The notes beneath the pieces are model-generated. The model ran no database searches, was not told the origin of the DNA, and worked only from the letters and a program-made list of their open reading frames with translations. This document shows, piece after piece, positions 7,829 to 34,174 of a DNA stretch of 64,000 nt (positions are counted from its first letter, which is position 1; each line of letters starts with the position of its first letter). Made by a program: the position numbers and the translations under genes. The stretch is taken from IMG/VR virus record IMGVR_UViG_3300017917_001342, positions 186,001 to 250,000 of that record. One strand, given 5' to 3'.

Positions 7829-7853
7829 AAGGGTGGTGCAATGCGCCACCCTT
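7829..7853 (+). terminator. Intrinsic terminator hairpin
   Basis: AAGGGTGGTGC-AAT-GCGCCACCCTT followed by a T-rich tract. Confidence 0.7.
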
Positions 7854-7881
7854 ATTCTTATGCAGACAATATATATGTTGC

Positions 7882-7887
7882 TAAATA
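7882..7887 (+). promoter_or_regulatory. Late-type promoter TAAATA
   Basis: CTAAATAT, 38 nt upstream of ATG 7926. Confidence 0.65.
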
Positions 7888-7925
7888 TTCAGCGCATAAT
7901 TTACATTATCCTGGATATTTACACT

Positions 7926-12960: not shown

Positions 12961-13410
12961 ATGCGCTTGTCTGAAATGCTCACATTTGATCAAGACACTA
13001 TAGACCATTTTGCAGAGATACTAGAAAAAGGTGAACCCTGGGCTATACAAACGATCTACGACGAATTAGAAGAATATGGTATACCCGACGGTGAGGAAGC
13101 TGTATTGTTTAGAGAACTGCTACCTGAGATAGTTGCCTGGTTTAATAACGCAATAACTCATGAGGCTCTTGCATATTCTGTAATAGATTACGCAATATTT
13201 CTAATACAGAACGAAAATCTTACAGCATTAATACCATTTGTCGTTAGAAGTTTAAAAGCAAATAAAACCGCAGTAATTAAACATCTGTTAACATTGATAA
13301 AAACCAATCACGAAGGTGCATTAGCAAGAGATTTGTTCAATGATCTATCAAAGTTTAACCTAAATTGGCCTGAATTAGCTGTAATTAAAAAAAGTTTAGA
13401 AGCGTTTTAA
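12961..13410 (+). CDS. Single WPEL-module protein
   Basis: MRLSEML leader; ends NLNWPELAVIKKSLEAF. Confidence 0.8.
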   Translation: MRLSEMLTFDQDTIDHFAEILEKGEPWAIQTIYDELEEYGIPDGEEAVLFRELLPEIVAWFNNAITHEALAYSVIDYAIFLIQNENLTALIPFVVRSLKANKTAVIKHLLTLIKTNHEGALARDLFNDLSKFNLNWPELAVIKKSLEAF

Positions 13411-14142
13411 ATGAGCGATAGCCCCTATACAGTTGTTAGTAAATCGTTTGATGAATTAAATGCTGCAAGTGAAGAAGCGCAGATTGCAGCAGTTAAAGCC
13501 AGACCAAATCTAATAACAAAAATTGATAATCCCAGTGCAGCAGTGCAATGGGCAGCAATTGAAGCTCACGCAATTGTTGCCAGATACTTAGAGCATCTCG
13601 ATGAGCGTGTACAACGAAAACTGATAGAAATAGATTATCGTAATCTACGTTACATAAACAATCCATCGCCTAGTATACAGTTAGCAGCAGTAACAGAAGA
13701 TCCTAAAAGTATTCAGTATATTACCAATCCAACTCCAGAAGCACAGGTTGTAGCAACTAAAAAATGGCCCGAGGCTATACGATACATCAGTAGTCCAACC
13801 GAAGATGCGCAGGTAAATGCAGTTCTTGGTCATCCGTGGTCTATAGAACACATTGCTGAGCCTTGTGTGCAAGCACAAAAAATTGCAATATATAGTCAAC
13901 CAGGTACAATGTTTGACTTGCAATGGCAGTTAGATCCTAATATCTTCAAAGAAGATGTAATCAAAACCGCCATTATTCGCACGATATTAACATCGTTAAA
14001 AAAGGACGGTAATACATATCAGGCAAGAAGATTTATCAATTTTTTAAAATCTTTTGATGTACAATGGCCTGAACTCGCAGTTATAGAACGTAGCATAGGC
14101 AACGAACCAGATGATGAATATGACGAAGGAATTCAACTATGA
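13411..14142 (+). CDS. Short helical-repeat protein (~23-aa repeats) plus C-terminal WPEL module
   Basis: About 6 repeats of P[ST]xxxQxxAVxxxPxxIxYIxN; ends VQWPELAVIERSIG. Confidence 0.8.
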   Translation: MSDSPYTVVSKSFDELNAASEEAQIAAVKARPNLITKIDNPSAAVQWAAIEAHAIVARYLEHLDERVQRKLIEIDYRNLRYINNPSPSIQLAAVTEDPKSIQYITNPTPEAQVVATKKWPEAIRYISSPTEDAQVNAVLGHPWSIEHIAEPCVQAQKIAIYSQPGTMFDLQWQLDPNIFKEDVIKTAIIRTILTSLKKDGNTYQARRFINFLKSFDVQWPELAVIERSIGNEPDDEYDEGIQL

Positions 14143-14888
14143 AAGCCAATGAATTCATTAACGAATCTATCAAATGGCAAGGCAACTCAGGTGCTACTCA
14201 AGCACGCCAAACTGATCATACTATTGAGGAAGCACGACGTTACGTTAAAGAAAACTATCCTCGAAATAAAACCTATACTATCAGCAGACTTGAACCAGGG
14301 TTTAGAGCATTGGATGCCAAAACCGGCTCTACTAATCCCAGTGCAGCAAATGCTACACTAAATCAAGAAGCAGCACTGAACCAGTTTGTTGAAATCTTTA
14401 AACTAAAACAAAATCCCTACATGAGCGGCAGCGAGCAAGTAACTGGCAGTATAGGATTCAGTTGGCATGTAGGTGAAGATAAAGAGCGCAAGCATGCCAT
14501 CTTCTATTATGAAGATCGCGGCATGGGCAATGACAGTATCACCATTGCTGCAAAAACCATTGTTGAACTCAAAGTAATGCAAGAAGTTCTTATTCATACA
14601 GGTCTTATCCCTGATCCTGATGAGGCCAAAGCAAAACGCACCGCTGACGCAGATAAACGTAGAGATGTACTTGCTAAAAAAGGCATTAAAATTGGTACTC
14701 GCATTACTGCTCGTAGACTAGACAACGGCGAAGTGTGGTTTGCTGGCAACGTAACTAGCATTGCACAAAACGGCTCTGTGGGTATTACTATTGATCAAGT
14801 AGATCCTGCTGTACAAGGTGTTACAGTTGGCAGTGTGTATAAAATGAAGCCAGGTAGTATTAGCAAAGACATGATCTCCAATGACTGA
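14139..14888 (+). CDS. Hypothetical putative internal virion protein
   Basis: Leader MKANEFINE/S closely resembles the T4 capsid-targeting sequence; beta-rich SH3/KOW-like C-terminus. Confidence 0.75.
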   Translation: MKANEFINESIKWQGNSGATQARQTDHTIEEARRYVKENYPRNKTYTISRLEPGFRALDAKTGSTNPSAANATLNQEAALNQFVEIFKLKQNPYMSGSEQVTGSIGFSWHVGEDKERKHAIFYYEDRGMGNDSITIAAKTIVELKVMQEVLIHTGLIPDPDEAKAKRTADADKRRDVLAKKGIKIGTRITARRLDNGEVWFAGNVTSIAQNGSVGITIDQVDPAVQGVTVGSVYKMKPGSISKDMISND

Positions 14889-14898
14889 TTATTTTCAA

Positions 14899-14913
14899 TA
14901 AATATCATAGGAG
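14899..14913 (+). promoter_or_regulatory. Late-type promoter TAAATA plus RBS
   Basis: ATAAATAT (core 14899-14904), AGGAG at 14909-14913. Confidence 0.7.
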
Positions 14914-14920
14914 ATTTATT

Positions 14921-15367
14921 ATGCGATTAGCAGATTTGTACGGCGACTTGTTTGAGTCTATCACAGCAGATGATATTAAAGATCCTATTTCCAAGGGACT
15001 AGTTCCTAATTTCATCCACAGTATGCCGTCTACTCATCTGCTAACAGGTATGGATCAATACTATCAATATTATAGATTCTTGATTGCCATTGCAGGTTAC
15101 CCGGAAGATTCCGACATACCATTAACTAGTGTTGTTAGGGATTGGCCTATGACAGTAGCATACACTACACAAGAAAAAGAAATGATAGATAAAGTTGCCA
15201 AACGTATGGGTATATCACCTACAGAAATTGCGTACGAAGGCAGTAAAGAATTACCCGATACCTACACTGTAAGTCCGGTAATGAAATTTTCAATGACTGA
15301 ATCTCAACACCGCAAATTAAAAAATCTAGCAGTTCTAACAGAGGCAATGATAAATGAAACTAAATGA
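14921..15367 (+). CDS. Hypothetical protein, paralogous to the N-terminal domain of the next gene
   Basis: Shared YRF, (A/G)YTxxE and VSPVMxFxM(T/S)E motifs with 15354..15752. Confidence 0.8.
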   Translation: MRLADLYGDLFESITADDIKDPISKGLVPNFIHSMPSTHLLTGMDQYYQYYRFLIAIAGYPEDSDIPLTSVVRDWPMTVAYTTQEKEMIDKVAKRMGISPTEIAYEGSKELPDTYTVSPVMKFSMTESQHRKLKNLAVLTEAMINETK

Positions 15368-17153
15368 TCTGTTTGAACAGTTTGGATCCACAAAACTTGC
15401 ACAAAATGCAGAAGCAGTAATACCACCTGTTGCGATATTCCCAGATCTTGACAACAGCAACAGTTACCTGCAATATAGATTCACAACTAATATGGCTGCG
15501 GCACGAGCGATTGCCGCCGGTGATGTACCATTTAAAAAAATTGTACCGTGGGAACAGTATCTAACTGTGGTAGGCTATACCCCAGAAGAAATAGAAACTG
15601 TGCGTCTAGCAGCAGAGCAATCTGGTATGAGAATGGAAATGCTTAACACTACCCCTAGCCACGAGCCAGATTGGGTTAACAAAGTTAGCCCGGTGATGCC
15701 GTTTCATATGAGCGAAACTAAGCGTAAAACCAAAGGCAAAGGTTTGTTTGAAAGCGATGGCAAACAGGTACTGGTAGTATATCCAGGACGTTTTCAGCCG
15801 GTACACCGAGGCCACGGTGCAGTGTTTAATGCACTACAAGAAGAGTTTGGTGGCAATGTGTTTATGGCAACGTCTGATAAAATAGAACCAGATCGCAGTC
15901 CATTCAGCTATGCAGATAAATCACTAATGGCTCGTGCTGCTGGTATACCTAGCGATAAATTTGTCAAGGTTAAAAATCCCTACAGTCCAATTGAAATTAC
16001 CAAACTCTACGATCCCAACAACACAGTGCTGATACTAGTTGTTGGTGCTAAAGACATGGTGGATGATCCTAGATTTAAATTTGGTAACAAAAAAGACGGA
16101 TCACCTAGTTACCTACAAAAATTTAAAGATATTGCTGTAGCTGAGCCTATGAGTAAACACGGCTATATTATGGAAGCACCCACTGTGGAATTTCTTGTAT
16201 TAGGACATCCCGTTACAAGTGCTACACAGGTACGTAATCTCTATGCTAAAAGTGATAACGTAAAACGAGATAGAATACTTAAAGATCTCTTTGAACAAAA
16301 CCGTGTAGAACTGAGACAACTGTTTGACAGTAAATTTGGTTCTGTGCAGGAAACTATCAGTGAATCTTTACACAGCGACCAAATTGTAGACCACATGCGC
16401 AATTTCTTAAAAATTGCACAACGTGAATTGCAATTAGCACAATTGCCTAAAATTATTTGGACTAGTTCAAGTACTGCTCATGGTGAGCGACCAACATTCG
16501 GGAAATTCCAAAATGACAACAACACTATTACAGTTAGCATTGTTAACAGGCATCCTATTGACATCATGCGTACACTTGCGCATGAACTCACGCATTACAA
16601 GCAAGATATCACAAAGGGTCTAAACGCCAACAGTGGTGATACTGGCAGTCCAGAAGAAGATGAGGCCAATGCTATGGCAGGCCGTATTATGCGGCATTTT
16701 GATGAAAAATACCCGCATGCATTTAACGCTAAACCGGTAGTATCAGAACAAATTAAACGTAGAAGTAAAACTACTAATGAAACTGATACAACTACACCAC
16801 AAACTAAAATGAATCCTGCAGATATAGAAGCAGACATGCTTGCTAATACAAGTGGTATGCCAGCGGATCCAAATGCTGCTAAAAACCTAGCGAAAAAGCT
16901 CGGTATTAAGCTGCTTGGTAAAATGGCAGGGAAAGCTATTGCTGGACCTGTAGGTGGTGTTGTAGGTGGTGTAATAGCAGGCGAAATTGCAGACCGCGCT
17001 CTTGTTAAAGAAGAAGTCTGGGATAAACCAAATCCTGTTAAAAAACATAAAAAGCTAGATGCTGACGATAAGGCTGCTGCAAAACGCAGAGCCAAAGCTG
17101 CTGGTAGAAAATACCCAAACATGGTTGACAACATCTGGGCTGCTAGACGATAA
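15354..17153 (+). CDS. Multidomain protein: unknown domain + HxGH nucleotidyltransferase + zincin metallopeptidase + Gly-zipper + basic peptide
   Basis: YPGRFQPVHRGH...SATQVR; RTLAHELTHYKQ...EDEANAMAG; GPVGGVVGGVIAG. Confidence 0.85.
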   Translation: MKLNDLFEQFGSTKLAQNAEAVIPPVAIFPDLDNSNSYLQYRFTTNMAAARAIAAGDVPFKKIVPWEQYLTVVGYTPEEIETVRLAAEQSGMRMEMLNTTPSHEPDWVNKVSPVMPFHMSETKRKTKGKGLFESDGKQVLVVYPGRFQPVHRGHGAVFNALQEEFGGNVFMATSDKIEPDRSPFSYADKSLMARAAGIPSDKFVKVKNPYSPIEITKLYDPNNTVLILVVGAKDMVDDPRFKFGNKKDGSPSYLQKFKDIAVAEPMSKHGYIMEAPTVEFLVLGHPVTSATQVRNLYAKSDNVKRDRILKDLFEQNRVELRQLFDSKFGSVQETISESLHSDQIVDHMRNFLKIAQRELQLAQLPKIIWTSSSTAHGERPTFGKFQNDNNTITVSIVNRHPIDIMRTLAHELTHYKQDITKGLNANSGDTGSPEEDEANAMAGRIMRHFDEKYPHAFNAKPVVSEQIKRRSKTTNETDTTTPQTKMNPADIEADMLANTSGMPADPNAAKNLAKKLGIKLLGKMAGKAIAGPVGGVVGGVIAGEIADRALVKEEVWDKPNPVKKHKKLDADDKAAAKRRAKAAGRKYPNMVDNIWAARR

Positions 17154-17184
17154 TTAATGCTGCAACTGCACAACGGAGGTTGTA

Positions 17185-17355
17185 GTGACATTATCAGCTA
17201 GTGACAGAGAAACACTTGGACGTATATTGTTCGAAACTGTGTGTCCAAGTAGAAATTGGCTAGATGTGTTACCAATGGAACGTAGACAGTGGGTGGCAGG
17301 CGCTGTTAAAATATATACTTTTGATTTAGATCAAATACGGCACGGCAGATACTAG
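17185..17355 (+). CDS. Small hypothetical protein, 56 aa (GTG start, not in the ORF track)
   Basis: GGAGGT RBS, then MTLSASDRETLGRILFE...RHGRY*; fills the intergenic gap. Confidence 0.55.
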   Translation: MTLSASDRETLGRILFETVCPSRNWLDVLPMERRQWVAGAVKIYTFDLDQIRHGRY

Positions 17356-17366
17356 TTGTTTTAAAC

Positions 17367-17372
17367 TAAATA
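17367..17372 (+). promoter_or_regulatory. Late-type promoter TAAATA, 5 nt from the ATG
   Basis: CTAAATATCTGCATG. Confidence 0.7.
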
Positions 17373-17377
17373 TCTGC

Positions 17378-19693
17378 ATGAAAATTAGCAGTATATTCAA
17401 AAACACAACTATATTAACTGATGGCAGGTCGTGGCGTCGTGACCCTGACGACGACATGTATAGTCGCGACAAAACATCAAAATACAAAATCAAAGATATT
17501 GTAGATGAACCGCCAGAAGAATTGGAAATCTCAGATGAAGAAAACTTCAAAGGGAAAGACCGAATAATTAAAATTCCTCATCTGAATTGTATATTTCTCA
17601 TTACTGCACATTGGCAATATAGACAATCACTTAGACATGGCAATTTAGACATTGCCATTGAAAAGCTATCAAACTTATTTGAACGTAACTACGACGTGAT
17701 ATCTAAACTTCCATATGGGTCGGAGTTTGGATTAATAGATCAAAAGAATTACAAAACTGTTTTTACCAAGCGTAGATCTAAAAACGGTACTACTGTATAT
17801 GCAACGAAAACCCTGCTTTCGCCTGAGATGAACCTAAGACCGTCGCAGTATTTTTTTAGAGAATCGTCTGACAACAGTGTGTTCTTAAAAGACCTTGTAA
17901 AAATGTCAGTTGGTATGCCGGACGCTGATTTTTGGATAAGACGCAGTGGCCAATTAAAAAGTCTCGGTGAACCTAGCAAACAATTTGACCCTGACAAAAT
18001 AGGTATCAAAGTTACTGCTACCAATATTATAGATCCAAACTATCTCTATTATGTGTTTATGAATTTGCAAAACCAGGGCGTGTTTGCGCAAATGGCAACA
18101 GGATCAACTGGTTTACAACACATTAAAATCAGCAGTCTTGCAAAAATACCGTTTGCACTAAGTGAATCGCTAAATGAAAACGACGATGAACCTATACGTA
18201 TTAGACTGCGTGGTAATGAAGATACTGCAAAGCGTTGGATCAAAAGCGTATACGATCAATTCCCAGCAAATCCGTTAAATGATCGTCAACACGTTATGCA
18301 ATTTGGCGACGATGCATACGTAGTGTTTGAATTAACACCAAGTTTTAACCGCAGAGGTGCCGTAGAAGTCAAGTGGATAAGCGCACACCCACAACGCAAA
18401 GGTCTCGGTTCTAAAGCACTGAAAACGTTGCAAGATTTAGCGCAAAAGAACAATGTTATGCTTACTCTTTACCCATGGGAAAAAGGTGAGATTAGCCAAC
18501 ATGATCTCAAGCGTTATTATAAAAAGCATGGGTTCAGAGGCGAAGGCGGCGGTAGTGATTACATGAAGTGGGATCCGCTGAACGAAAAAGACTACGACGA
18601 TATAGACGACGATGATAACCGCACACCTGACATAGAAGGTGCTAAGAAATATGTACAGGCTGTAAAACGAGATTTTGATCAGTTTGGTGAGTTGCCAATT
18701 ACTGGCATAATGAATGATTTAGAATATCGCTATAACTTAGATCCATCAACGGTTGATCAAGTTCTACAGCCTGTTAAAGACGACATTGTAATCTACATAA
18801 ACACTGAATTTGGAAAAGGTGAATACAGTATATACGGTGCAGTGCGTCGTCTAGATAAACTGTACAGATCAGGTATCAGTTGGCACGAACTGTATCGCAT
18901 GTTAGATAATCACAAGCACAGTATTATAAAATACATGCTCAGTCAGATTAAAAAAGGTGCAACTGGTATGGTAATGGAAATGACTATCATACTCAAACGT
19001 ATGGGACTTGACTGGCCAGAACTTACTGCAATACAACGCAGTTTGCGTGCAGATAAGCAAGCATTGCCAGAATCATATTCAAAAGAACAACGTATTGAGT
19101 TTGCACAAAAAGCATTTGAGCGAGGTACTGTATACGGTTTTTGGCGATTAGATCTGCTTGATTTAAAAGCTAGCGAAGTACCAGGCGCTATAGAAATACT
19201 TAACGCTGATAAAGACCGTTTTATTAGTGCATTATTACGCATGGTTAAAGACGGTAGCTTTTCTGCTGTGAAATATGCATTAAAAAATTATAGACATCAC
19301 GGGCTGGATTGGCCAGAACTTGATGTTATAGAACGCAGTGTTAAACAGATATCTGAATCCGACAGTTATGATGATCTGCGTAAACGCAACATGGACAAAG
19401 TGCTTAAATCGTTTAAGCTTGGTGCGTGGAACGGCTTCAAAAATCTAGATTTTTTTAATATGAAAGCTGCTGAAGTTCCAGGTGCAGTAGAAGCGTTAGA
19501 ACAGTTTAAAGAACAATTTGTTAAGATGCTGTTAACTCGCATGAAGAGTGGTGACTATGGTGATATAGGTACTGCTAGAAACCTAGCTGCTCAGATGCAA
19601 GGTGTTGGTATGAGTTGGCCGGAATTAGACATTGTTATAAAAAGTGCTAACAAAGCGTTTGATGATTATGATAAAAGTTTAGGCAACGACTGA
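17378..19693 (+). CDS. Multidomain protein: possible RNase-like domain + HsdS-type TRD + GNAT + three WPEL-terminated modules
   Basis: ITAHWQYRQSLR; IDPNYLYYVF...ATGSTGLQHIKISSLAKIPF; QRKGLGSKAL...RYYKKHGF; WPEL x3. Confidence 0.8.
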   Translation: MKISSIFKNTTILTDGRSWRRDPDDDMYSRDKTSKYKIKDIVDEPPEELEISDEENFKGKDRIIKIPHLNCIFLITAHWQYRQSLRHGNLDIAIEKLSNLFERNYDVISKLPYGSEFGLIDQKNYKTVFTKRRSKNGTTVYATKTLLSPEMNLRPSQYFFRESSDNSVFLKDLVKMSVGMPDADFWIRRSGQLKSLGEPSKQFDPDKIGIKVTATNIIDPNYLYYVFMNLQNQGVFAQMATGSTGLQHIKISSLAKIPFALSESLNENDDEPIRIRLRGNEDTAKRWIKSVYDQFPANPLNDRQHVMQFGDDAYVVFELTPSFNRRGAVEVKWISAHPQRKGLGSKALKTLQDLAQKNNVMLTLYPWEKGEISQHDLKRYYKKHGFRGEGGGSDYMKWDPLNEKDYDDIDDDDNRTPDIEGAKKYVQAVKRDFDQFGELPITGIMNDLEYRYNLDPSTVDQVLQPVKDDIVIYINTEFGKGEYSIYGAVRRLDKLYRSGISWHELYRMLDNHKHSIIKYMLSQIKKGATGMVMEMTIILKRMGLDWPELTAIQRSLRADKQALPESYSKEQRIEFAQKAFERGTVYGFWRLDLLDLKASEVPGAIEILNADKDRFISALLRMVKDGSFSAVKYALKNYRHHGLDWPELDVIERSVKQISESDSYDDLRKRNMDKVLKSFKLGAWNGFKNLDFFNMKAAEVPGAVEALEQFKEQFVKMLLTRMKSGDYGDIGTARNLAAQMQGVGMSWPELDIVIKSANKAFDDYDKSLGND

Positions 19694-19694
19694 C

Positions 19695-21914
19695 ATGAAG
19701 TTAGATGATATATTTGAAGCAGGCCCAAAGATAGACAACATTCATGGTATGGGTGCTGTTGGTATAAGTGGTAATATCGACTACATGGGTTTACGAGTAT
19801 ACGTAAAACCCAGCGTGTTTCTCAAACTTGCATACAGTCATCCTAACCTTGATACTACATACATTCAACAACAGTTGTCGATTGGACAAGCTATCGGCGC
19901 ACCGTTTCTAAGTATTGCAATACCTGAATCGTGGATCAGTCCAGATTCACATTACGAAAAAGTTGTAGAAGGTGACCTAACTGATCCTGCTGAAATCACA
20001 GGTCATGAAGGTCGTCATCGCATGGCTGCTATATTGAAGGAGTACGGAGATGTTCCTGTTGAAACACATCTTGTGTTTAATGGTCTTCGTCGTCGTCATA
20101 TTACTGATAACATGATCGAACGACTAAACAGTGATATATTAAACGAACATGGTAAACTTCTAATAGGGCCATGGTTTAGTTTAACAGAAACTATCACCGA
20201 AGCCGATGCAGATTTTATCTATCGCAATTTTCTAAAAGACATTAACATATACGGTATAACAAAAGCATTACATAAAATTTCTCTACGTATTGAACGTGCT
20301 GATGCAGACGGTGAAGATCCAGAGACGACTAGAAGTATTTTAACTGATCACAAAGAGTTAATACTTAAAGAACTATTATCTTGGATAAAACTATGTGAAT
20401 ACAAAGAAGATATCTACGAAGTTATCAAAGCTATCAAGTATGTTAATAGTATAGGTATTGATTGGCCAGAATTTGAAACAATTAAAAAAGGCTGTAAAAG
20501 TATTGCCGCCTCGGCGCCGAGTAATCCTTTTCAACTTGGTTATCACGAAATTAATGAAAACTTTGCAGATGGCAAAGGACCAGGTAGACCCGGTGATAGT
20601 CGCAGACATGGTATACCCAAACATGCAACTCTGTCACAGTTAGATAAAATTGGTAAAGGGTCTGGACGTAAGGCGCAGCTAGCACGTTGGCAAGCAAATA
20701 TGCGTAGAGGTCGTGCTAAAGTTAACGAAAATGAACTAGGCAGCTACATGCCATTAGATATTGCACAACTTAAAGAATTACTATTAGTTGTGCAAGATCA
20801 ACAGGAAATTGTAGATGATCACAGTTTTGATGTAGAACCGGGAACCGTTGCATATAAGCAAATAGAACAGGAATATCGTGCATTAACTGCTATCGAATAT
20901 GTTGTAAAAAACAATATCAAAGCAATTAATAATCCCGAACTACAGCCAGGCGCTATTTTTGTATATGATTGGGAATACGATGATGCAATTGGTGCAGCTC
21001 AATTACAAGTAACTGGTACAGTGGCCGAATTGAAATGGTTAGGTAGCTATAACAGCTCTGGTAAGCAACTGATAAAGCAGGGATTGTCACATGCTAAAAC
21101 AATGGGTGCTAAGTCTGTTAATCTAACTAGCAAATGGGGCAGTGCTGAATACTATAAAAAGCAAGGCTTTACACCAAAAGATAATGTGGCAGATAACCCA
21201 ATAACAGATGTCGGTACATCATTTACAAAAGACATAGATGAAGCATCTCAACAGTATAAAAAGATCAGTCCTGAACTGATAAAAGACATTGTTGCAACTG
21301 TGCCACAGACTCGTGAAATATGGTTCCATGGTAGTAGAGCAACAGGCGCACATCGACGTGACAGTGATTGGGATATACTAGTAGTAGTACCAGATGACAT
21401 TAAAGGCAATACCTATATAGATATTATAGAACTGTTGCGTAACATAGAACGAAACTATCCGAACTACGATATACAACCTGCTCACCCACGTAATATGATC
21501 ACTAATATTGCTAGAGAAGAAGGTGTATTGTTGTGGTCACATAAACCGCCAGTTACTGAAGCCATTGCACCACATGGCGATTTTAACAACGAATTGCGCA
21601 TGATGAAAGCTGGTACTAAGCCTGCTGCAATAATTGATCCTATGGTATATGAACACATGTATAAACCATTGGTAAATGATTACGGATGGGAAGTGGTTAC
21701 ATTTAAAAACAATTATGGTCGTAGATACGTAGTAGGACAGATGGGCGAATATGCTCGTATTAAACGTATTGCTGATCTAGTTGACAACATGAATAAAAAA
21801 ATGGAACAAGGTGTTAAAGCAACACCTGAGTATCATATACAATTAGGTCGCTTACTAGGTTATAGTGAACAAGATATTGAAGATTTCTTAGAAAAAATTG
21901 CAATGAATTCTTGA
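19695..21914 (+). CDS. Multidomain protein: ParB/Srx-like + WPEL + basic peptide + GNAT + MNT nucleotidyltransferase + unknown domain
   Basis: HEGRHR; WPEF; GKQLI...AEYYKKQGF; FHGSRATG...DSDWDILVVV; GRLLGYS. Confidence 0.8.
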   Translation: MKLDDIFEAGPKIDNIHGMGAVGISGNIDYMGLRVYVKPSVFLKLAYSHPNLDTTYIQQQLSIGQAIGAPFLSIAIPESWISPDSHYEKVVEGDLTDPAEITGHEGRHRMAAILKEYGDVPVETHLVFNGLRRRHITDNMIERLNSDILNEHGKLLIGPWFSLTETITEADADFIYRNFLKDINIYGITKALHKISLRIERADADGEDPETTRSILTDHKELILKELLSWIKLCEYKEDIYEVIKAIKYVNSIGIDWPEFETIKKGCKSIAASAPSNPFQLGYHEINENFADGKGPGRPGDSRRHGIPKHATLSQLDKIGKGSGRKAQLARWQANMRRGRAKVNENELGSYMPLDIAQLKELLLVVQDQQEIVDDHSFDVEPGTVAYKQIEQEYRALTAIEYVVKNNIKAINNPELQPGAIFVYDWEYDDAIGAAQLQVTGTVAELKWLGSYNSSGKQLIKQGLSHAKTMGAKSVNLTSKWGSAEYYKKQGFTPKDNVADNPITDVGTSFTKDIDEASQQYKKISPELIKDIVATVPQTREIWFHGSRATGAHRRDSDWDILVVVPDDIKGNTYIDIIELLRNIERNYPNYDIQPAHPRNMITNIAREEGVLLWSHKPPVTEAIAPHGDFNNELRMMKAGTKPAAIIDPMVYEHMYKPLVNDYGWEVVTFKNNYGRRYVVGQMGEYARIKRIADLVDNMNKKMEQGVKATPEYHIQLGRLLGYSEQDIEDFLEKIAMNS

Positions 21915-21945
21915 TTCAATATCAAATATCTAACATGCTTGTGTT

Positions 21946-22788
21946 ATGACAACAGTATTATTCAGCATGCCTTGCCACGAAAGTCACGAGGCTATAAACA
22001 TAAACATTTCAAACCTGCGTCGTTTTAATGGACTGCAACATCCAGTTGTTATTCATGCAGATTCTGGATGGAACGAATTTGATCCAGAACGTGTAGATTT
22101 TTCCGATATCTACGTCAATCCAAGACGTTATAGAACACAACATGCACATAGTCAGATTACTACTCACATCAGTAACTACTTGACAGCAGTAGAACAAGGT
22201 GTCGAGTTTGATTACGTTGCAGTATTTCACACTAGCGAAATGTTTGTAAAACGTGGTATGCATGATCATATAGCACGATACGATTATGGTCTTTGGTTTA
22301 CACCAGACACCCAGCCTAAAGATTTTGGTTGGCCTCCTCTACGTAACGCTATAGAAATGAATATGTTTAAGGATCTGTTTCCTGCAAATGCAGTAGACAA
22401 CTATCTAGGTAATCTGCTAGAAGGCAGTTGGTGGAGCAGAGATCTTTTCAAAGAAATAGTAGATTGGACACTTTACCACTATGATCTCGAAGATCTTCGT
22501 TTACCATGGGCAGCAGAAGAATGTTTCTTTCCTACTCTTAGCTGGCATCTAAGCGGAGGTAAACGATTTACACATCCCTATTGCGCATTTCATCATCAAG
22601 ATCACTATGTACAAGATCGTACACTGATAGACAACATACGTGCAGGTAGAGATATCACCTGCTGGCAACCTCAGAATTTTGTCTACGATTGGAAACCTAT
22701 TTCTAGCGAAGGTTTTTATTCTGTTAAGCGTATCAGCAGAGACTTAGACGATCCAATTAGACATTATATAAGTTGGCTAAAGACATGA
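21946..22788 (+). CDS. Possible glycosyltransferase-like protein
   Basis: GT-A-like start (VLFSMPCHE...VVIHAD), FDYV, AEECFFPT. The ORF is solid but the function is weakly supported. Confidence 0.5.
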   Translation: MTTVLFSMPCHESHEAININISNLRRFNGLQHPVVIHADSGWNEFDPERVDFSDIYVNPRRYRTQHAHSQITTHISNYLTAVEQGVEFDYVAVFHTSEMFVKRGMHDHIARYDYGLWFTPDTQPKDFGWPPLRNAIEMNMFKDLFPANAVDNYLGNLLEGSWWSRDLFKEIVDWTLYHYDLEDLRLPWAAEECFFPTLSWHLSGGKRFTHPYCAFHHQDHYVQDRTLIDNIRAGRDITCWQPQNFVYDWKPISSEGFYSVKRISRDLDDPIRHYISWLKT

Positions 22789-22836
22789 TGTAATATTTGT
22801 TAAATATAGTTGAGAATTCACTCGACTGTTTTTTAA

Positions 22837-22842
22837 TAAATA
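22837..22842 (+). promoter_or_regulatory. Late-type promoter TAAATA, 5 nt from the ATG (second copy at 22801-22806)
   Basis: ATAAATATCATCATG. Confidence 0.7.
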
Positions 22843-22847
22843 TCATC

Positions 22848-23756
22848 ATGAGACTATTAGACATTTTCACCCCCGATTACCTCCTGGAAGACCTTGAAGG
22901 TCAAAAAGCCCAGCGTGGTCAATTTATCAAAGATAAACTAGGTAAAGACTTTAAAGGTCTACCTGGGTATGATGACATCGATAAGCTAATTGACAAAATT
23001 GGCGAAGTTGACCCGTCACGTAATGGCATTTACATGCCCTGGATCGCGCGGTTGGTAATCACTAAACCGGGCGAAAACCGATCTGAAGACCTTGATCGTG
23101 TTGGACAAGACTTGCAAAACTTTGAACAGTTTAAAGCACGTATTGCTAACAAAGATATTAACAGTTACAAGAGTTTCCAACAGCTCTATGACGTAATTGA
23201 ACCATTTACTAGACCACAGCCAAAAACTGCTGATCAAAAAGCCAAAGAAAAAGAAGCAGCAGAAATTGCTAAACTGAAGAATGAAATTATCACAGTTTAC
23301 AATGGTCCCGAAGGTTGGATACGTATTCCTAAAACACAAGCTGCTGCGGTGTATCTAGGTCGTGGTACTCGTTGGTGTACTGCTGCTGATCGCAACAACA
23401 TGTTTAATCACTATAGTAAAAACGATAACCTGTTTGTTGTACACGATAAAGCACAGGCCAAAGCCTACAGAGAGTTTATGGCAGACCCTGCTAATGCTGG
23501 TAAGCGTAAACCGCACAACGGTATGTATCAGATGCACATTGAAAGTGGACAGTTTGCGTCAGATGACGACAGCAATCAAGGTATGAATGCTGTACCAGAT
23601 TGGGCAAGAACTCCAATTCTTGATTACTACAAAGCTAACAATCCAAAACTAACTTGGAAGCAGATTATGACACTGAGTACATTCGGTGACGAAAATCTTG
23701 CTGCGGGTACAGAACATGAGGATCTAATCAACCTCATGAAAGCCTATGGTATCTAA
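22848..23756 (+). CDS. Hypothetical protein with PcfJ-like GxGTxWCT domain
   Basis: Start moved to MRLLDIF...LLE/D; IPKTQAAAVYLGRGTRWCTAA...FNHY motif. Confidence 0.65.
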   Translation: MRLLDIFTPDYLLEDLEGQKAQRGQFIKDKLGKDFKGLPGYDDIDKLIDKIGEVDPSRNGIYMPWIARLVITKPGENRSEDLDRVGQDLQNFEQFKARIANKDINSYKSFQQLYDVIEPFTRPQPKTADQKAKEKEAAEIAKLKNEIITVYNGPEGWIRIPKTQAAAVYLGRGTRWCTAADRNNMFNHYSKNDNLFVVHDKAQAKAYREFMADPANAGKRKPHNGMYQMHIESGQFASDDDSNQGMNAVPDWARTPILDYYKANNPKLTWKQIMTLSTFGDENLAAGTEHEDLINLMKAYGI

Positions 23757-23759
23757 ACA

Positions 23760-24788
23760 ATGCGCTTCGCTGAATTGCAACCTCACACTCAATTCAGCGA
23801 AGCTGCTCTCAACTCTGTAACACAGCGTTATATTGATTCACACATAAAACACTTACTATACAAAAAAGACCAGTATGGTCCTCGTAATGTACGTAAAGTT
23901 GTTGAATTCTTAACTGATTTACAAAATCGTTTTAAACGAGATGGCGATCCCACTACATTTGAAATCGCCGAAGTACTTGAACCATATAGACAAGATATTA
24001 TAAAGTACTTGTCTAATTTGTTTGATGGTGTACCAGACAGTTATACGCCTGTATTTCAAGCAGCTATATTAACTAATAGTGGTGTACACTGGCCGGAAAT
24101 AGTTGAAATATTTGAGCCTTATCGAGAACCTATTATTAAAAGAATACTACAAACTGTGCGACACGGTTACAGAGACAGTGATGTAGATTCTTGGGTGACA
24201 GCATTACGAGCAATTGGGGTTGATTGGCCAGAAGTAGATATCATAGAACGAAGCCGAAACGCTAGTAAACAAATCGATGAAAACAGCTTAGTTGCTGATT
24301 CGCATAGACAATATATGCTTGATAATATTAGAGACCGTCGGTTTCATATTATCTTTTCACAATTAATCACCTATTTCAAACCAGATCCAGTTATTGCAGA
24401 TGCATTAACTAAAAACAAATCTGTTGTGCTGCAATACATATCCGATGCAATTAAGAACGGGTATTTCTTAGGTGCTGCAAAATATCTTGTTGGTTTGCAA
24501 AATGTTGGTGTTGCGTGGCCGGAACTGGAAAACATTAAAACTGCAATAAAAGTACCGTGCATAACTCGTATGCTAACAATACTAAAAAAGTCTGATTACG
24601 ATAGAGACCATCTGACAAATATATTAGAAACAATAAAGTATTTGAGAAAAGCTGGACTTGATTGGCCTGAGTTAAAAATTATCAACGACGCAGCCGAAAC
24701 GGAACTTGATTATCATCCCGAAGATGAAGAAGAAGAATACATCGCAACTGATGACGATCGCGGCGACTACTACAGAGATCTCTATTAA
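23760..24788 (+). CDS. WPEL-module repeat protein (4 copies)
   Basis: WPEI, WPEV, WPEL, WPEL; internal IDE/N junction. Confidence 0.85.
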   Translation: MRFAELQPHTQFSEAALNSVTQRYIDSHIKHLLYKKDQYGPRNVRKVVEFLTDLQNRFKRDGDPTTFEIAEVLEPYRQDIIKYLSNLFDGVPDSYTPVFQAAILTNSGVHWPEIVEIFEPYREPIIKRILQTVRHGYRDSDVDSWVTALRAIGVDWPEVDIIERSRNASKQIDENSLVADSHRQYMLDNIRDRRFHIIFSQLITYFKPDPVIADALTKNKSVVLQYISDAIKNGYFLGAAKYLVGLQNVGVAWPELENIKTAIKVPCITRMLTILKKSDYDRDHLTNILETIKYLRKAGLDWPELKIINDAAETELDYHPEDEEEEYIATDDDRGDYYRDLY

Positions 24789-24795
24789 ACAACGA

Positions 24796-24801
24796 TAAAT
24801 A
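24796..24801 (+). promoter_or_regulatory. Late-type promoter TAAATA
   Basis: ATAAATAT in the intergenic gap before 24831. Confidence 0.65.
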
Positions 24802-24830
24802 TCCCTATAACAGCACGGGTATTTTTCTAA

Positions 24831-26198
24831 ATGCAGATACAGAGTTTAATGGAAGCAAAAAACATTCCGCCGGATGTAGCTGCAAAAATAGACAGCATAG
24901 TAAAATCCATGCTGAAAACTGGCTACATAGATGTGTGTGTAAGACGACTTGAAGATGAAGGTCTCACAGATGCTGGCATACTTGATGTGTTAACTCCACA
25001 TGCAGACAAGCTAGTAAATCTCATAACAAGTAAAAAGCATAAGACATTACCTGGTTATACAGTTTATGAGTTGCTATTACTATTAGGTATAGGAGCAAGA
25101 TGGCCGTCGTTAATTGCAGCACTTGCCAATAACAAAGAGTCAGTAATTAAGTACATTTTAACACAGTTTAAAGAATATTCTAACGATGATATCGAAATGG
25201 ATATAATAAATTTCGATATAAAAGTTTTGCAAAAATTAGGTATCGATTGGCCAGAATTAGCAGTTATAAAAAAATCTGTTGAAAACGAATTGGTAAGAAT
25301 GGGTCACCCGCCATCATTAATGGAAGCACAGCCTGTAATACCTCAAAAACTTATTAAAATATTCAACCAACATCTTAACAACATATATGAGCGCGGTATT
25401 GACAAGTTAGCGTATTTGATAATTGATATGAAAAATGCAGGTGCAACCGATCAACAGATTGCATCGCTTCTCAGTGAAAAGCGTCAAGAAATTGTAAAGA
25501 TACTCAGAAATACTATTCACAATGAATCTCCTAAAAACTGGAGAGCAATTAACGAATTTGCTGTTGCAATTGCGTCATTATTAGATCTTGGAATCAAATG
25601 GCCGCCATTATTAGAATTATTAAACTACTATCGAGATAAAATCGAAGCCTGGGCAATTGCTGCGGTATTTGATGCAGGATTTGGCAAGCATGTTGCTGAG
25701 AAATTACGTAAGTTTGAACAATTGGGTTTTGATATATTACCAATACGCCGAGCAATCAAAGCAAACATATTACCTACACTAAAAGAATATCTTACTAAAA
25801 ATGGTATTGATCATTATACAGTTGCTAAATTAGAGGCTATGCATAGACTAAATCTATTGCCTAAAGCTCTAGATGACAAAACTACTAAACTTGTTTTTGA
25901 TGCAATAGAAAACTCTATGAGCAAAGGTATGCCTAATGATTTCAAAAATGCATTGAAATATTTTGCAATGATGAACATACCAAATCTTGAATCAACCGTA
26001 AAAAGCATAGTAGAAGCTAATAAAACACCTGTTATAAAATCATTACTAACTGCTATGAAAACTGGTTTAGGTAATGCAAACAACTATTACACGTTACCAA
26101 CTTATTACATAGTAGATACACTACAGCTATTACATAAACTAGGTATACAGTGGCCAGAAATTGCTGCAATTACTAGAAGCTTGAAGGCAGGGCGTTGA
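24831..26198 (+). CDS. WPEL-module repeat protein
   Basis: WPSL, WPEL, WPPL, WPEI; leader MQIQSLME/A and internal SLME/A. Confidence 0.85.
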   Translation: MQIQSLMEAKNIPPDVAAKIDSIVKSMLKTGYIDVCVRRLEDEGLTDAGILDVLTPHADKLVNLITSKKHKTLPGYTVYELLLLLGIGARWPSLIAALANNKESVIKYILTQFKEYSNDDIEMDIINFDIKVLQKLGIDWPELAVIKKSVENELVRMGHPPSLMEAQPVIPQKLIKIFNQHLNNIYERGIDKLAYLIIDMKNAGATDQQIASLLSEKRQEIVKILRNTIHNESPKNWRAINEFAVAIASLLDLGIKWPPLLELLNYYRDKIEAWAIAAVFDAGFGKHVAEKLRKFEQLGFDILPIRRAIKANILPTLKEYLTKNGIDHYTVAKLEAMHRLNLLPKALDDKTTKLVFDAIENSMSKGMPNDFKNALKYFAMMNIPNLESTVKSIVEANKTPVIKSLLTAMKTGLGNANNYYTLPTYYIVDTLQLLHKLGIQWPEIAAITRSLKAGR

Positions 26199-26199
26199 T

Positions 26200-28059: not shown

Positions 28060-29227
28060 AAACGCAGATGAATTAATTGCTGATCGTATGGACGGTTTAA
28101 AAAAGCAAGAACCTCTAGCACTTAGAGGATTAATCCATAATCTAAAGAGCAGACCCTATGAATGGTACGATGATGATATTGCTGCACTGTTAGAAGAATA
28201 CAAAGCTGACATATTAAAATACATCACACGCAAATATCATGTGGGCCAGATATCATTACCAACTAATGATATTAAAAAGCTAATGAGTGTTGGAATACAA
28301 TGGCCTGAATTAACTGATCTTGTCAACCGATACAAAACAGCTATTATCAAAAATGTACTAGAAACTCTTAAGCTAGATTACAGAAACGTAGCTGACACTG
28401 TAGGTACGTTGACTAGTATGAATCTCGGTTGGAAAGAATTAGACGCAATTAATCGTAGCTTAAATGCACTGCGTAATAATGTAAACGAAGCTTTAAAGTA
28501 TGATAACAATGAAATAGAAGAACTCAAAACTAACATAATTCAAGACCTACATGACGGATATTATAGAGATGCGTTAGATGTCATAGCAACACTGTGGCAT
28601 GACAATAGTAATCTTGGCGACGTAACTGCTATAACACGTTTATTGGAAAAACATAAACGTGGGTTGATTACACAGTTATTAACTGTAATCAAATATAGTA
28701 GCACTTACGAATTAAGCAAATATTTTAAAGATTTTATTAAAGGACTACAAGATTTTGGGATTGATTGGCCAGAATTCGACGCTATGTTAAAATCGATCAA
28801 CGCTGACAAAACAACACTTGATGAATCTTATTCAAAAAACGATGCAGAACAGTATAAGGATGAAATCATTAATACCATTAAGAAGGATGATATGGATGAT
28901 TTGTTTGAAATGCTTGCTGAGTTTGCATGGATACCGAGAGCACTTGTAGGCGATGTTACAAAACTAAATCGTATACTAGAACTACACAAAGTTCGAGTAA
29001 TAAAAGCATTACTGTCTTATATGCGAGAGCTAGATGACAGCGGTATTTGCTACATCATGCCACAAATTCTAGGCGGTTTAGAACATGCTGGCATAAATTG
29101 GCCCGAGTTAAAAATTATAGATCAAAGTGTTGACAAAATACAAAAACGTCGCGAAGCCGAAGATGACGATTTGTATGAGAGTAGCAAAGCAGTAAATACT
29201 ACTGCAAAAAAGGCTCGCAGACGATGA
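28046..29227 (+). CDS. WPEL-module repeat protein
   Basis: WPEL, WKEL, WPEF, WPEL; junctions VNE/A, LDE/S, LYE/S. Confidence 0.85.
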   Translation: MTSSKNADELIADRMDGLKKQEPLALRGLIHNLKSRPYEWYDDDIAALLEEYKADILKYITRKYHVGQISLPTNDIKKLMSVGIQWPELTDLVNRYKTAIIKNVLETLKLDYRNVADTVGTLTSMNLGWKELDAINRSLNALRNNVNEALKYDNNEIEELKTNIIQDLHDGYYRDALDVIATLWHDNSNLGDVTAITRLLEKHKRGLITQLLTVIKYSSTYELSKYFKDFIKGLQDFGIDWPEFDAMLKSINADKTTLDESYSKNDAEQYKDEIINTIKKDDMDDLFEMLAEFAWIPRALVGDVTKLNRILELHKVRVIKALLSYMRELDDSGICYIMPQILGGLEHAGINWPELKIIDQSVDKIQKRREAEDDDLYESSKAVNTTAKKARRR

Positions 29228-34171: not shown

Positions 34172-34174
34172 TCT

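Follow-up and report, generated by a model that had tools for sequence, protein, structure and literature searches.

A truncated, orphan homologue of the HsdS TRD is an autonomous, mobile domain found in phage polyvalent proteins

A single polyvalent protein, encoded by a phage or a conjugative element, joins numerous effector domains of unrelated kinds, and its delivery with the DNA is predicted; the paper describing these proteins (PMC5512222; Iyer, Burroughs, Anand, de Souza, Aravind 2017) proposed processing mainly through built-in zincin metallopeptidases and makes no mention of a target-recognition domain (TRD) or an HsdS-like module. In phage T4, IPI, IPII and IPIII, which are internal proteins, together with Alt, carry a short N-terminal leader ending in hydrophobic-x-Glu, the T4 CTS being MKTYQEFIAE (PMC8442874; for CTS and ejection-protein biology see also PMC7411985 and PMC5694885). 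HsdS, the subunit that gives type I restriction–modification (R-M) systems their specificity, is defined by a pair of TRDs connected through two conserved alpha-helical regions (PMC12602166).

The stretch of DNA analysed here, called the window, comprises 64,000 nucleotides (positions 186,001 to 250,000) of IMG/VR record IMGVR_UViG_3300017917_001342, from an uncultured phage known from that metagenomic record alone. An alternative genetic code was dropped as unneeded, every ORF being open under table 11. One ORF of the window encodes a 771-aa phage polyvalent protein (P0001), in which disparate domains (BECR-fold, TRD, GNAT and helical repeats) share a single polypeptide. A leader and a disordered acidic stretch are followed by a RelE/BECR-like domain, a truncated TRD that we call the mini-TRD, a mini-GNAT and 3–4 helical 'WPEL' repeats, whose linkers contain LPE565/S and ISE660/S (the slash marks a candidate cut). 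Orthologues from other metagenomes are 86, 72 and 64% identical. The features, in window coordinates, are as follows.

12961..35437, + strand: cluster of ~17 co-oriented ORFs, the majority of which share the WPEL repeat
17378..19693, + strand: polyvalent protein P0001, 771 aa
17378..17404, + strand: N-terminal leader MKISSIFKN, like the T4-CTS-like leaders of neighbouring ORFs but without the terminal Glu
17564..17863, + strand: RelE/ParE/BECR-fold domain, predicted PBECR-like RNase module (residues ~63–162)
17855..17863, + strand: FRE162/S163, candidate prohead-protease site at the N-terminal border of the mini-TRD
17864..18166, + strand: mini-TRD (residues 163–263), equivalent to strand 1 of a canonical HsdS TRD together with its C-terminal half
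18158..18178, + strand: LSE263/S and LNE267/N, candidate prohead-protease sites at the C-terminal border of the mini-TRD
18185..18586, + strand: small GNAT acetyltransferase domain (residues ~270–403, ending at LNE403/K)
18587..19690, + strand: C-terminal alpha-helical WPEL repeats, 3–4 copies of ~100 aa each

The mini-TRD is an autonomous, mobile domain. A sequence-only reading had delimited a unit of ~100 aa at 17864–18166, bounded by FRE/S and LSE/S, and these coordinates proved exact. A phmmer search of 1.84 billion representatives showed at least 335 relatives at E<=1e-3 (152 at E<=1e-10), almost all aligning only to residues ~165–260, and the domain is encoded on 168 IMG/VR viral contigs. 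It occurs stand-alone (~95 aa) or in N-terminal, internal or C-terminal positions in proteins of up to 2722 aa. Family members are 34–56% identical to the query, and an 80-sequence alignment has a mean column identity of 41% with invariant A/G/G columns. Residues A183, D184, F185, W186, R189, G197 and G209 are invariant or nearly so, and the conserved motif reads PDADFW-x-R-x-GS-x3-VG-x-P ... IGIKV ... DP-x-YLYY ... G-x-F ... A-x-G-x-T-x-L-x-I. A degenerate relic was dismissed, the domain being too conserved for one. Across 80 members, the median pI is 8.7 and the net charge only about +2.

So far the family is known from metagenomes only, and 50,697 GenBank phage records gave no match by megablast with the ORF or tblastn with the mini-TRD; the sole PHROGs match was phrog_2668, of unknown function (E 1.8e-4). 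The nearest Pfam family is DUF6943 (PF22105), to which 33 of the 80 members have sub-threshold matches (best E 1e-4), with P0001 itself at 14.9–15.7 bits, below the 27-bit gathering cut-off; the ESM Atlas, too, places DUF6943 clusters with the closest neighbours of the family, both by features and by structure. Bacteria (Bacteroidota, Cyanobacteriota) are the main source of DUF6943 proteins, whose function is unknown. No literature mentioning DUF6943 was found.

The mini-TRD is genuinely homologous to the HsdS TRD but lies outside the curated Pfam family. Its AF2 model (pLDDT 86.7) matched 1YDX (E 1.3e-4) and 7EEW (E 8.1e-4) in a Foldseek search of the PDB, and VIA-align against 48,161 chains returned TRDs at all of ranks 1–15 (Z 9.7 to 3.3), the best non-TRD fold reaching Z 2.7; searches of the ESM Atlas, BFVD and AFDB concurred. 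With hhalign, the family aligned to a profile of 78 HsdS TRDs over 80 columns (probability 95.4%, E 1.7e-8) at a score of 52.0, where 30 column-shuffled control profiles scored at most 15.5. The 78-TRD profile was required: a single EcoKI HsdS sequence gave no hhalign match to the family, and the family profile retrieved no TRD from PDB sequences, where matches were noise at E>0.5. The HsdS-type character first proposed from the letters alone is borne out by both predicted structure and profile, though Pfam Methylase_S (PF01420) itself gives no match at E<=10 for P0001 or 80 relatives.

The mini-TRD shares its fold (Z up to 9.7) with the TRDs of HsdS (PF01420; 1YDX, 1YF2, 7EEW, EcoKI HsdS), as well as the motifs gD-hydrophobic-x-x-R/S-x-G-x3-vG, id-x2-fLyY and a-x-G-x3-x-I ... 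l-x2-i-x-iP. It differs in size, at ~95 aa against 150–180 aa, and lacks ~55–65 residues between strand 1 and the 'gDil..G..vG' hairpin. HsdS has two TRDs, whereas the phage protein has one truncated TRD. AF2 models contain no long helices around the mini-TRD that could represent the conserved-region or coiled-coil helices of HsdS, and on its C-terminal side the domain leads through the linker SLNENDDEP to the GNAT. In M2S1 structures, most of the contact with HsdM is made by the conserved-region helices. HsdS TRDs are hypervariable between alleles, and variation among 103 close HsdS relatives falls in the TRD columns; the mini-TRD family, in contrast, is conserved. Esub1 of Streptococcus pyogenes (8VSQ) also has the TRD fold (Z 7.3) and no demonstrated methylase partner (PMC11754733), but it is an orphan half-S-subunit that keeps a full-size TRD and dimerising helices, both absent from the mini-TRD, and it is a host protein targeted by the phage protein Prx, whereas the mini-TRD is phage-encoded.

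The mini-TRD is an orphan. HsdS normally occurs with hsdM and hsdR, whereas the mini-TRD has neither and is embedded in a phage multi-effector protein. The early observation that no methylase lies nearby extends to the entire 518,643-bp phage genome, in which N6_Mtase, Eco57I, N6_N4_Mtase, MethyltransfD12 and Methylase_S had no match; HsdR context and HsdS conserved helices are likewise missing. Methylase domains were also absent from the 81 full-length family members, and neighbour clustering with PHROGs at 80 viral mini-TRD loci revealed neither a methylase nor a constant partner. Neighbours at the viral loci include endonuclease, exonuclease, DNA polymerase and helicase genes, and in other phages the stand-alone mini-TRD genes have replication and nuclease genes around them rather than head genes. 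The contigs encoding two family members (2–4 kb) had uninformative neighbours. Within the 81 full-length members, co-occurring domains are GNAT, ART-PolyVal, PARP, NUDIX, GH19, cell-wall hydrolase, cytidylyltransferase, Pol-beta NTase, ParB_N, Hint, PcfJ and sigma70_r4; the repertoire of PMC5512222 is shared in GNAT, ART-PolyVal, Pol-beta NTase, ParB_N, BECR RNases and peptidoglycan hydrolases.

On either side of the mini-TRD in P0001 are domains of effector type. The upstream domain, previously a weak call as a small-toxin RNase, has a RelE/BECR fold by VIA-align and is a predicted RNase-like module, supported at the level of the fold: its AF2 model (pLDDT ~85 over residues ~63–162) gave more than 25 RelE/ParE/HigB/YoeB/CdiA-CT/BrnT matches at Z 3.7–6.1, led by RelE1 (6.1), RelE (5.9) and HigB2 (5.8). 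Its conserved residues are His78, which lies in the first helix, R82/R86, and Thr145, close to the domain end, with His78 and Thr145 conserved across 6–7 homologues; this arrangement agrees with the PBECR RNase configuration (PMC5512222); no Pfam model matched, those for PBECR included. A role for the mini-TRD as immunity protein or antitoxin of the adjacent RNase module was dropped, as only 5–6 of the 335 relatives carry that module. The downstream domain had been called a clear GNAT, and we too read it as one; P0001 falls just below the Pfam Acetyltransf_1 cut-off (20.4 bits, E 6.5e-4, against 20.7); the homologue P0006, 40% identical to the P0001 domain, lies above it at 40.7 bits. The best PDB sequence match of the GNAT was 6IUF, which is AcrVA5 (E 0.018).

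The surrounding cluster, in which cytidylyltransferase, HExxH peptidase and Pol-beta NTase are among the domains of effector type, is enriched in T4-CTS-like leaders. These occur on 6 of 17 cluster ORFs (MKANEFINE/S, at window position 14139; MRLADLYGDLFE/S; MKLNDLFE/Q; MKLDDIFE/A; MQIQSLME/A; MKITELSE/A) against 15 of 426 ORFs elsewhere (p 5e-5), and one such leader is on the ORF beside the capsid gene. The P0001 orthologues P0004 (MKICSIISE/A) and P0005 (MKICSIITE/S) have the full CTS-like pattern, and the leader of P0006 is MRATEFITE/E; the hydrophobic-x-Glu ending of the T4 leaders recurs on both the MKANEFINE/S ORF and P0006. The gp21-family protease and gp23-family capsid protein of T4 also have counterparts in this genome, a T4-type, gp21-family prohead protease (Peptidase_S77, E 9e-26; positions 407627–408076 of the genome, minus strand) encoded adjacent to a gp23-like capsid protein (E 3.5e-93) whose propeptide region contains ...ILFE/SATPG. 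Three of three complete mini-TRD-carrying relatives (335–360 kb) encode S77 as well.

The FRE/S and LSE/S borders of the mini-TRD fit the motif of T4-type prohead proteases and are candidate cleavage sites. Across the family, 104 of 163 mini-TRD flanks contain [LIVMF]-x-E, whereas windows drawn at random from these proteins have it in 26% of cases (p 4e-24). The border motif is also directional: it occurs 144 times forward and 70 times reversed, the x-D version just 24 times, and 2000 composition-preserving shuffles never attained 144. The motif comprises only three residues and the representatives are phylogenetically non-independent, so these p-values overstate the case. Sequence similarity to T4 internal proteins was not found, and the putative cargo here differs from those proteins in being a string of domains with further cleavage motifs, that is, a polyprotein. 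It also departs from the processing proposed in PMC5512222, in that the linkers carry a T4-type prohead serine protease motif and the proteins T4-like leaders.

The reading we favour, and hold to be reasonably probable, is that the mini-TRD is a cassette of a capsid-delivered polyprotein, acting as an early effector and as an autonomous binding module for one invariant ligand. Either a T4-type N-terminal capsid-targeting leader or the helical repeats that these proteins share would carry the polyprotein into the prohead, and a gp21-type prohead protease would cut after Glu in the inter-domain [L/I/V/M/F]-x-E motifs (FRE162/S and LSE263/S), releasing a mini-TRD of ~11 kDa that would exit the capsid with the DNA upon infection. 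Its ligand may be DNA, bound independently of sequence, or the gamma-class adenine-methylase module with which TRDs normally pair. We infer packaging, cleavage, ejection and the ligand alike, the leaders, motifs and head genes being the basis for delivery. The sequence-only reading had described the domain as injected; a polyvalent cluster with CTS-like leaders, S77 and gp23-like genes and enriched border motifs speaks well for that description, and the mini-TRD probably travels from the capsid into the host. Many stand-alone family members begin directly with the mini-TRD and have no leader, so capsid delivery is not obligatory for its function.

Four other roles were weighed. A functional specificity subunit (or half-subunit) that joins a methylase to methylate phage or host DNA would explain the TRD fold and homology, but we find it hardly credible: there is no methylase in the 518-kb genome or the 81 family proteins, no conserved-region helix, only a single truncated TRD, none of the hypervariability typical of real TRDs and no Methylase_S match in Pfam. 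Having lost a TRD segment, the coiled-coil regions and the methylase partner, and being conserved instead of hypervariable, the mini-TRD cannot work in this way. Quite improbable, too, is a packaging or assembly adaptor that binds the scaffold core, portal or another head component and brings effectors into the prohead with no role in the host. The mini-TRD is very often the first domain (residues ~10–105) of otherwise unrelated multi-domain proteins and has no fixed partner domain, as an adaptor might; however, C-terminal, internal and leaderless ~95-aa occurrences also exist, the CTS-like leaders and shared helical repeat of the cluster could already serve this purpose, and cleavage motifs on both sides suggest release, not anchoring. 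A sequence-independent DNA-binding module on the packaged genome, which would protect the DNA in cis or ensure co-ejection of the cargo, is possible though not likely. DNA binding is the ancestral TRD function, the family is mildly basic with R189 and K211 conserved, and T4 internal proteins are basic and DNA-embedded (PMC3012670, PMC8442874); the charge is nevertheless modest, conservation peaks at acidic, aromatic or Gly positions (D182, D184, F185, W186) and not at a basic patch, and the missing TRD part is one that differs between specificities, so that much of the DNA-reading surface may be lost.

An anti-restriction decoy, the mechanism put forward in the sequence-only reading, we judge unlikely. 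It would occupy the TRD-binding surface of a gamma-class adenine-methylase module (HsdM of type I R-M, possibly PglX of BREX or type IIG enzymes) or coat recognition sites, leaving host restriction complexes unable to read the DNA that enters. Such a role would suit an orphan phage TRD that resembles known anti-defence proteins in being small and autonomous and that is strongly conserved, as for a conserved target. All solved fold homologues partner gamma-class N6-adenine methylases (type I, IIB, IIG/L, BREX PglX, M.TaqI, CamA), the accompanying modules are of counter-defence type (the AcrVA5-nearest GNAT and PBECR-like RNases), and T4 IPI* is a precedent for capsid-delivered anti-restriction (PMC3012670). 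The domain nonetheless lacks the conserved-region helices that, with TRDs, define HsdS (PMC12602166), HsdM binding could not be shown for the orphan TRD protein Esub1 (PMC11754733), no genomic association names a target, and the absence of the variable TRD half and of diversification counts against masking of specific sites. A literature search for phage TRD-like anti-restriction proteins found nothing. As for the two actions proposed from the letters alone, site masking is unlikely because the family is conserved and lacks the ~55–65-residue TRD part that varies with specificity, and the usual route to poisoning M2S1 assembly is improbable for a domain that has none of the conserved coiled-coil helices of HsdS. 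Tentatively, and with the view that it is rather unlikely, we also consider that the mini-TRD founds a class of capsid-delivered 'TRD mimics' that dock on the gamma-class adenine-methylase module common to BREX, type IIG and type I R-M systems and blind these systems to incoming DNA. The prohead protease would free such a mimic from a CTS-targeted polyprotein. What is imitated would then be a protein, the specificity subunit, and not DNA as with Ocr. Ocr and ArdA might share a target with the mini-TRD (type I R-M, BREX) only if the decoy reading is right; they have a different fold and are strongly acidic, whereas the mini-TRD family is not. A DNA mimic was dropped on these grounds, the family being basic and of TRD fold, and the separation from mimics such as Ocr drawn in the sequence-only reading holds.

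If the mini-TRD is indeed a cassette of a capsid-delivered polyprotein, a DNA-recognition domain of restriction enzymes would have been captured, trimmed to its conserved core and spread in very large uncultured phages, a new evolutionary fate for the TRD fold and an ~11-kDa candidate against type I R-M and BREX. A head maturation protease would then process a leader-targeted polyprotein, such that a single targeting signal could load many effectors, and [L/I/V/M/F]-x-E borders together with T4-like leaders would allow candidate ejected proteins of uncultivable huge phages to be listed from sequence alone.

The HsdS-like unit that the sequence-only reading placed at nucleotides 17864-18166 lies in a single 771-aa open reading frame (ORF; window 17378-19693, + strand; product P0001), where it corresponds exactly to residues 163-263, with FRE ending at residue 162 before it, LSE at 263 closing it and S264 following. 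We refer to it as the mini-TRD, after the target-recognition domain (TRD) of the type I restriction-modification (R-M) specificity subunit HsdS. A phmmer search of 1.84 billion cluster representatives with P0001 residues 1-275 identified 335 proteins at E<=1e-3, nearly all matching only within residues ~165-260. In relatives the domain stands alone (~95 aa) or takes an N-terminal, internal or C-terminal place in proteins as long as 2722 aa, and it is encoded on 168 IMG/VR viral contigs. The family is mildly basic (median pI 8.7), and an 80-member alignment has a mean column identity of 41% and the signature L-x-DL ... PDADFW-x-x-R-x-GS-x3-VG-x-P ... IGIKV ... DP-x-YLYY ... G-x-F ... A-x-G-x-T-x-L-x-I. 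Judged by sequence, the mini-TRD is a true mobile domain rather than a random pattern. Its closest Pfam family is DUF6943 (no known function), with sub-threshold matches in 33 of 80 members. In IMG/VR loci L053, L054, L056, L062, L069 and L078, a family-B DNA polymerase gene is followed directly downstream by a stand-alone mini-TRD gene of 109 aa, and the gene cluster around P0001 likewise lies just upstream of a DNA polymerase (window 37543-40311); this proximity may be weak synteny.

The alignment-based AlphaFold2 model of the mini-TRD (mean pLDDT 86.7) had as its best Foldseek matches in the PDB M. genitalium HsdS (E 1.3e-4), a V. vulnificus type I methylase and BsaXI S, together with Esub1, PacII S, 1YF2 and 3OKG. 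VIA-align, a search independent of Foldseek, placed only TRDs at ranks 1-15 among 48,161 chains (Z 9.7 to 3.3; best unrelated fold, Z 2.7), drawn from type I, IIB and IIG/L enzymes, BREX PglX, M.TaqI, CamA and M.BseCI. The ESM Atlas, BFVD and AlphaFold-DB clusters agreed, their closest entries being viral hypothetical proteins of ~95-110 aa and DUF6943 proteins, with HsdS and TRDs fused to methylases coming next. At the sequence level, the mini-TRD family profile found no TRD among PDB sequences, and a profile of 78 distinct TRDs, taken from 103 relatives of EcoKI HsdS, aligned with it over 80 columns (probability 95.4%, E 1.7e-8), scoring 52.0 against <=15.5 for 30 column-shuffled controls and one reversed control. 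This alignment pairs P0001 residues 180-263 with EcoKI HsdS residues ~72-160, matching the HsdS hairpin gDil..G..vG to PDADFW..GS..VG, id..fLyy to DPNYLYY, and the last strand ahead of the HsdS PP. The proposed TRD likeness was thus upheld by the model, both structure searches and the TRD profile, but the curated Pfam Methylase_S model matched neither P0001 nor 80 relatives, even at E<=10. On the basis of the structure matches and the profile alignment, the mini-TRD combines strand 1 with the C-terminal half of a TRD, the one whose structure is conserved; the domain lacks ~55-65 residues of a normal TRD and the conserved-region helix.

By definition HsdS has two TRDs, kept in place by two helical conserved regions, and works with HsdM (PMC12602166). 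In contrast, P0001 has one truncated TRD, then a short acidic linker and a GNAT, and the mini-TRD family is conserved at positions that vary in real HsdS TRDs. The description of the domain as an orphan extends well beyond its neighbourhood: a methylase domain was absent from 81/81 full-length family members, and N6_Mtase, Eco57I, N6_N4_Mtase, MethyltransfD12 and Methylase_S (four DNA adenine/amino-methyltransferase Pfam families plus Methylase_S), each of which gave matches in control genomes, had none across the whole 518,643-bp phage genome (G000), a viral record that is rated as complete and has direct terminal repeats. The window covers its bases 186001-250000; GC content is ~40%. A working specificity subunit is largely ruled out by the single truncated TRD, the lack of hits to the searched methylase families in the genome and of a methylase domain in the family, and the conservation. 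Such a blank is unusual at this phage size. Because none of the searched methylase families matched, the phage is suggested to counter restriction otherwise, for example by ejected effectors or base modification.

In the rest of P0001, residues ~63-162 form a RelE/ParE/BECR-type domain (pLDDT ~85, in a model built on seven sequences) with >25 matches (Z 3.7-6.1) to RelE, HigB, ParE, YoeB, YafQ, CdiA-CT, RegB and BrnT. Its few homologues keep His78 of the first helix and Thr145 close to the domain's end, and PBECR RNases of polyvalent proteins have the same His/Thr configuration (PMC5512222); no Pfam PBECR model matched the domain. What had been a weak call of a toxin-RNase-like domain thus gains support from the predicted fold. 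The GNAT reported downstream (residues ~270-403, window 18185-18586) is small, falling just under the Pfam cut-off in P0001 and well above it in the homologue P0006. Its best solved relative by sequence is 6IUF, the acetyltransferase AcrVA5 (E 0.018), an anti-CRISPR that acetylates Cas12a; as a lead, the P0001 GNAT may be a protein acetyltransferase whose target is an enzyme of host defence.

In residues 404-771 a ~100-aa alpha-helical repeat carrying a "WPEL" motif (G-[LIM]-[DS]-W-P-E-L-x2-I-[EQK]-[RK]-S) recurs 3-4 times; it is TPR-like by predicted structure and matches no Pfam or PHROG family. The repeat, in one to five copies per ORF, is common to at least 15 ORFs of a cluster of ~17 co-oriented ORFs (window 12961-35437, + strand), and occurs in a few ORFs outside it (G000 64681-65340, 74823-75644 and 338521-338847). 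It may be a common element holding the cluster proteins in the head core. The orthologues P0002 (967 aa), P0003, P0004 and P0005 keep the mini-TRD and GNAT core and differ by entire cassettes: all four carry ~190 additional residues between GNAT and repeats, and P0004 and P0005 lack the RelE-like module, their leader being joined directly to the mini-TRD. This shuffling falls at linkers bearing the candidate cleavage motifs.

Across 81 full-length members, the mini-TRD is fused to GNAT, DUF6321, ART-PolyVal, PARP, GH19, cell-wall hydrolase, NUDIX, cytidylyltransferase, dCMP deaminase, Pol-beta NTase, ParB_N, PcfJ, Hint and sigma-70 region 4 domains. This is the repertoire that Iyer et al. (2017) described for "polyvalent proteins", whose injection with DNA they predicted (PMC5512222); no TRD or HsdS-like module appears in that paper. 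P0001 is therefore a phage polyvalent protein, a known kind, and of the neighbouring ORFs listed here those at window 15354-17153 and 19695-21914 have the same character:

Window 7833-12959, + strand: 1708-aa ORF directly upstream of the cluster, with a doubtful, mechanically chosen GTG start; weak partial matches (DUF6861, E 1.9e-6; phrog_7595 at the C-terminus)
Window 13411-14142, + strand: 243-aa ORF; phrog_5925 (no known function), E 2e-33; built of ~25-aa repeats (NPS/T-x-x-x-Q-x-x-A-V-x-x-x-P-x-x-I-x-Y-I) with a WPEL repeat at the end
Window 15354-17153, + strand: second polyvalent protein, 599 aa; cytidylyltransferase-like domain (Pfam E 4.8e-9), HExxH metalloprotease-like stretch at residues 366-446 (AHELTHY, phrog_87), conserved C-terminal 47 aa (phrog_34011, E 1.9e-15)
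Window 19695-21914, + strand: 739-aa neighbour; Pol-beta nucleotidyltransferase domain (Pfam E 3.7e-8)

The 599-aa protein possibly brings its own processing peptidase. By eye, the 739-aa protein has a putative ParB/sulfiredoxin-like GHEGRHR near residue 100 and a putative GNAT-like stretch near 440.

The window also encodes a Lon-like protease, an NMN adenylyltransferase, a family-B DNA polymerase and a collagen-like tail fibre. Outside it, G000 has the gene of a T4 gp23-like major capsid protein (E 3.5e-93), adjoined by that of a Peptidase_S77 prohead protease of the T4 gp21 type (E 9e-26); the source is a phage of very large genome whose head morphogenesis is, by gene content, of the T4 type. 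The capsid protein carries ILFE/SATPG (slash after the Glu) within its predicted propeptide region. Peptidase_S77 was present in 3/3 complete mini-TRD-carrying relatives (335-360 kb); the remaining large contigs checked were 30-56% fragments. In T4 head maturation, gp21 cuts (L/I)-x-E behind the Glu. The related proteases of giant phages cut at A-x-E or S/A/G-x-E (PMC5694885). T4 internal proteins bear the leader MKTYQEFIAE (PMC8442874), their capsid-targeting sequence (CTS), by which they are sent to the prohead core and which gp21 then removes (PMC8442874; PMC7411985, PMC5694885). We found CTS-like leaders on 6/17 cluster ORFs against 15/426 other G000 ORFs (Fisher p 5e-5), and on further genes:

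Cluster ORFs starting at window 14139, 14921, 15354, 19695, 24831 and 34175: MKANEFINE/S, MRLADLYGDLFE/S, MKLNDLFE/Q, MKLDDIFE/A, MQIQSLME/A, MKITELSE/A
Window 52782-53513, - strand: MRIFEFDTLDE/A
Locus L085, 475-1026, - strand: MRNFISIVE/A, on a 183-aa ORF beside the gp23-like capsid gene
P0001 orthologues and relatives: MKICSIITE/S, MRATEFITE/E, MRFTEIITE/S, MKLTDLFE/A

P0001 itself begins MKISSIFKN, without the Glu. The FRE/S and LSE/S borders proved to be a family-wide pattern, not a quirk of P0001: [LIVMF]-x-E occurs in 104/163 mini-TRD flanks (153 representatives) compared with 26% of 17-aa windows drawn at random from these proteins (p 4e-24; such enrichment p-values are optimistic because the representatives are mutually related), followed mostly by S, N, A or G. 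Flanks held 144 forward against 70 reversed motifs and 24 of [LIVMF]-x-D, the forward count exceeding all 2000 composition-preserving shuffles (mean 59.9 ± 6.4). A motif of three residues is weak evidence at any single site. Given these leaders and borders, P0001 most likely enters the host by the T4 route of internal, ejected proteins. Since every inter-domain linker carries an [LIVMF]-x-E-type motif (E162, E263/E267, E403, E565, E660), we read the ORF as a polyprotein that would be loaded into the prohead, then cut at these motifs into separate domains, which would finally be ejected.

The case is at its weakest over what the mini-TRD does. The domain works alone, because leaderless ~95-aa versions are common, and it has no fixed partner domain among the 81 full-length members; its conservation points to an invariant ligand. 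Two readings are about equally likely. The mini-TRD could bind DNA independently of sequence, in the style of T4 internal proteins, DNA binding being the ancestral TRD function. Alternatively, in a sharpened form of the decoy first proposed, it could bind a gamma-class adenine-methylase module, with which every solved homologue of its fold is paired; for Esub1, however, an orphan TRD protein, HsdM binding could not be shown (PMC11754733). The original decoy had two forms: to mask recognition sites, the family would have to diversify and to keep the variable TRD half, and it does neither; to poison M2S1 assembly through the usual interface, the mini-TRD would have to possess the conserved helices, and it lacks them. 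A packaging adaptor or a residual S-subunit role is less likely than either reading. The boldest reading, in which the mini-TRD imitates the specificity subunit as a protein mimic and so blinds type I R-M or BREX, we consider rather improbable.

The T4-type internal-protein route is already known. We found no curated model for the mini-TRD family and no literature on a TRD-like phage module; a TRD-derived module in polyvalent proteins, with a large family of members in uncultured phages of very large size, appears to be new, as do the predicted T4-like capsid-targeting leaders on polyvalent proteins. The sequence evidence that the head protease, not a built-in metallopeptidase, may cut polyvalent proteins into domains also appears to be new.
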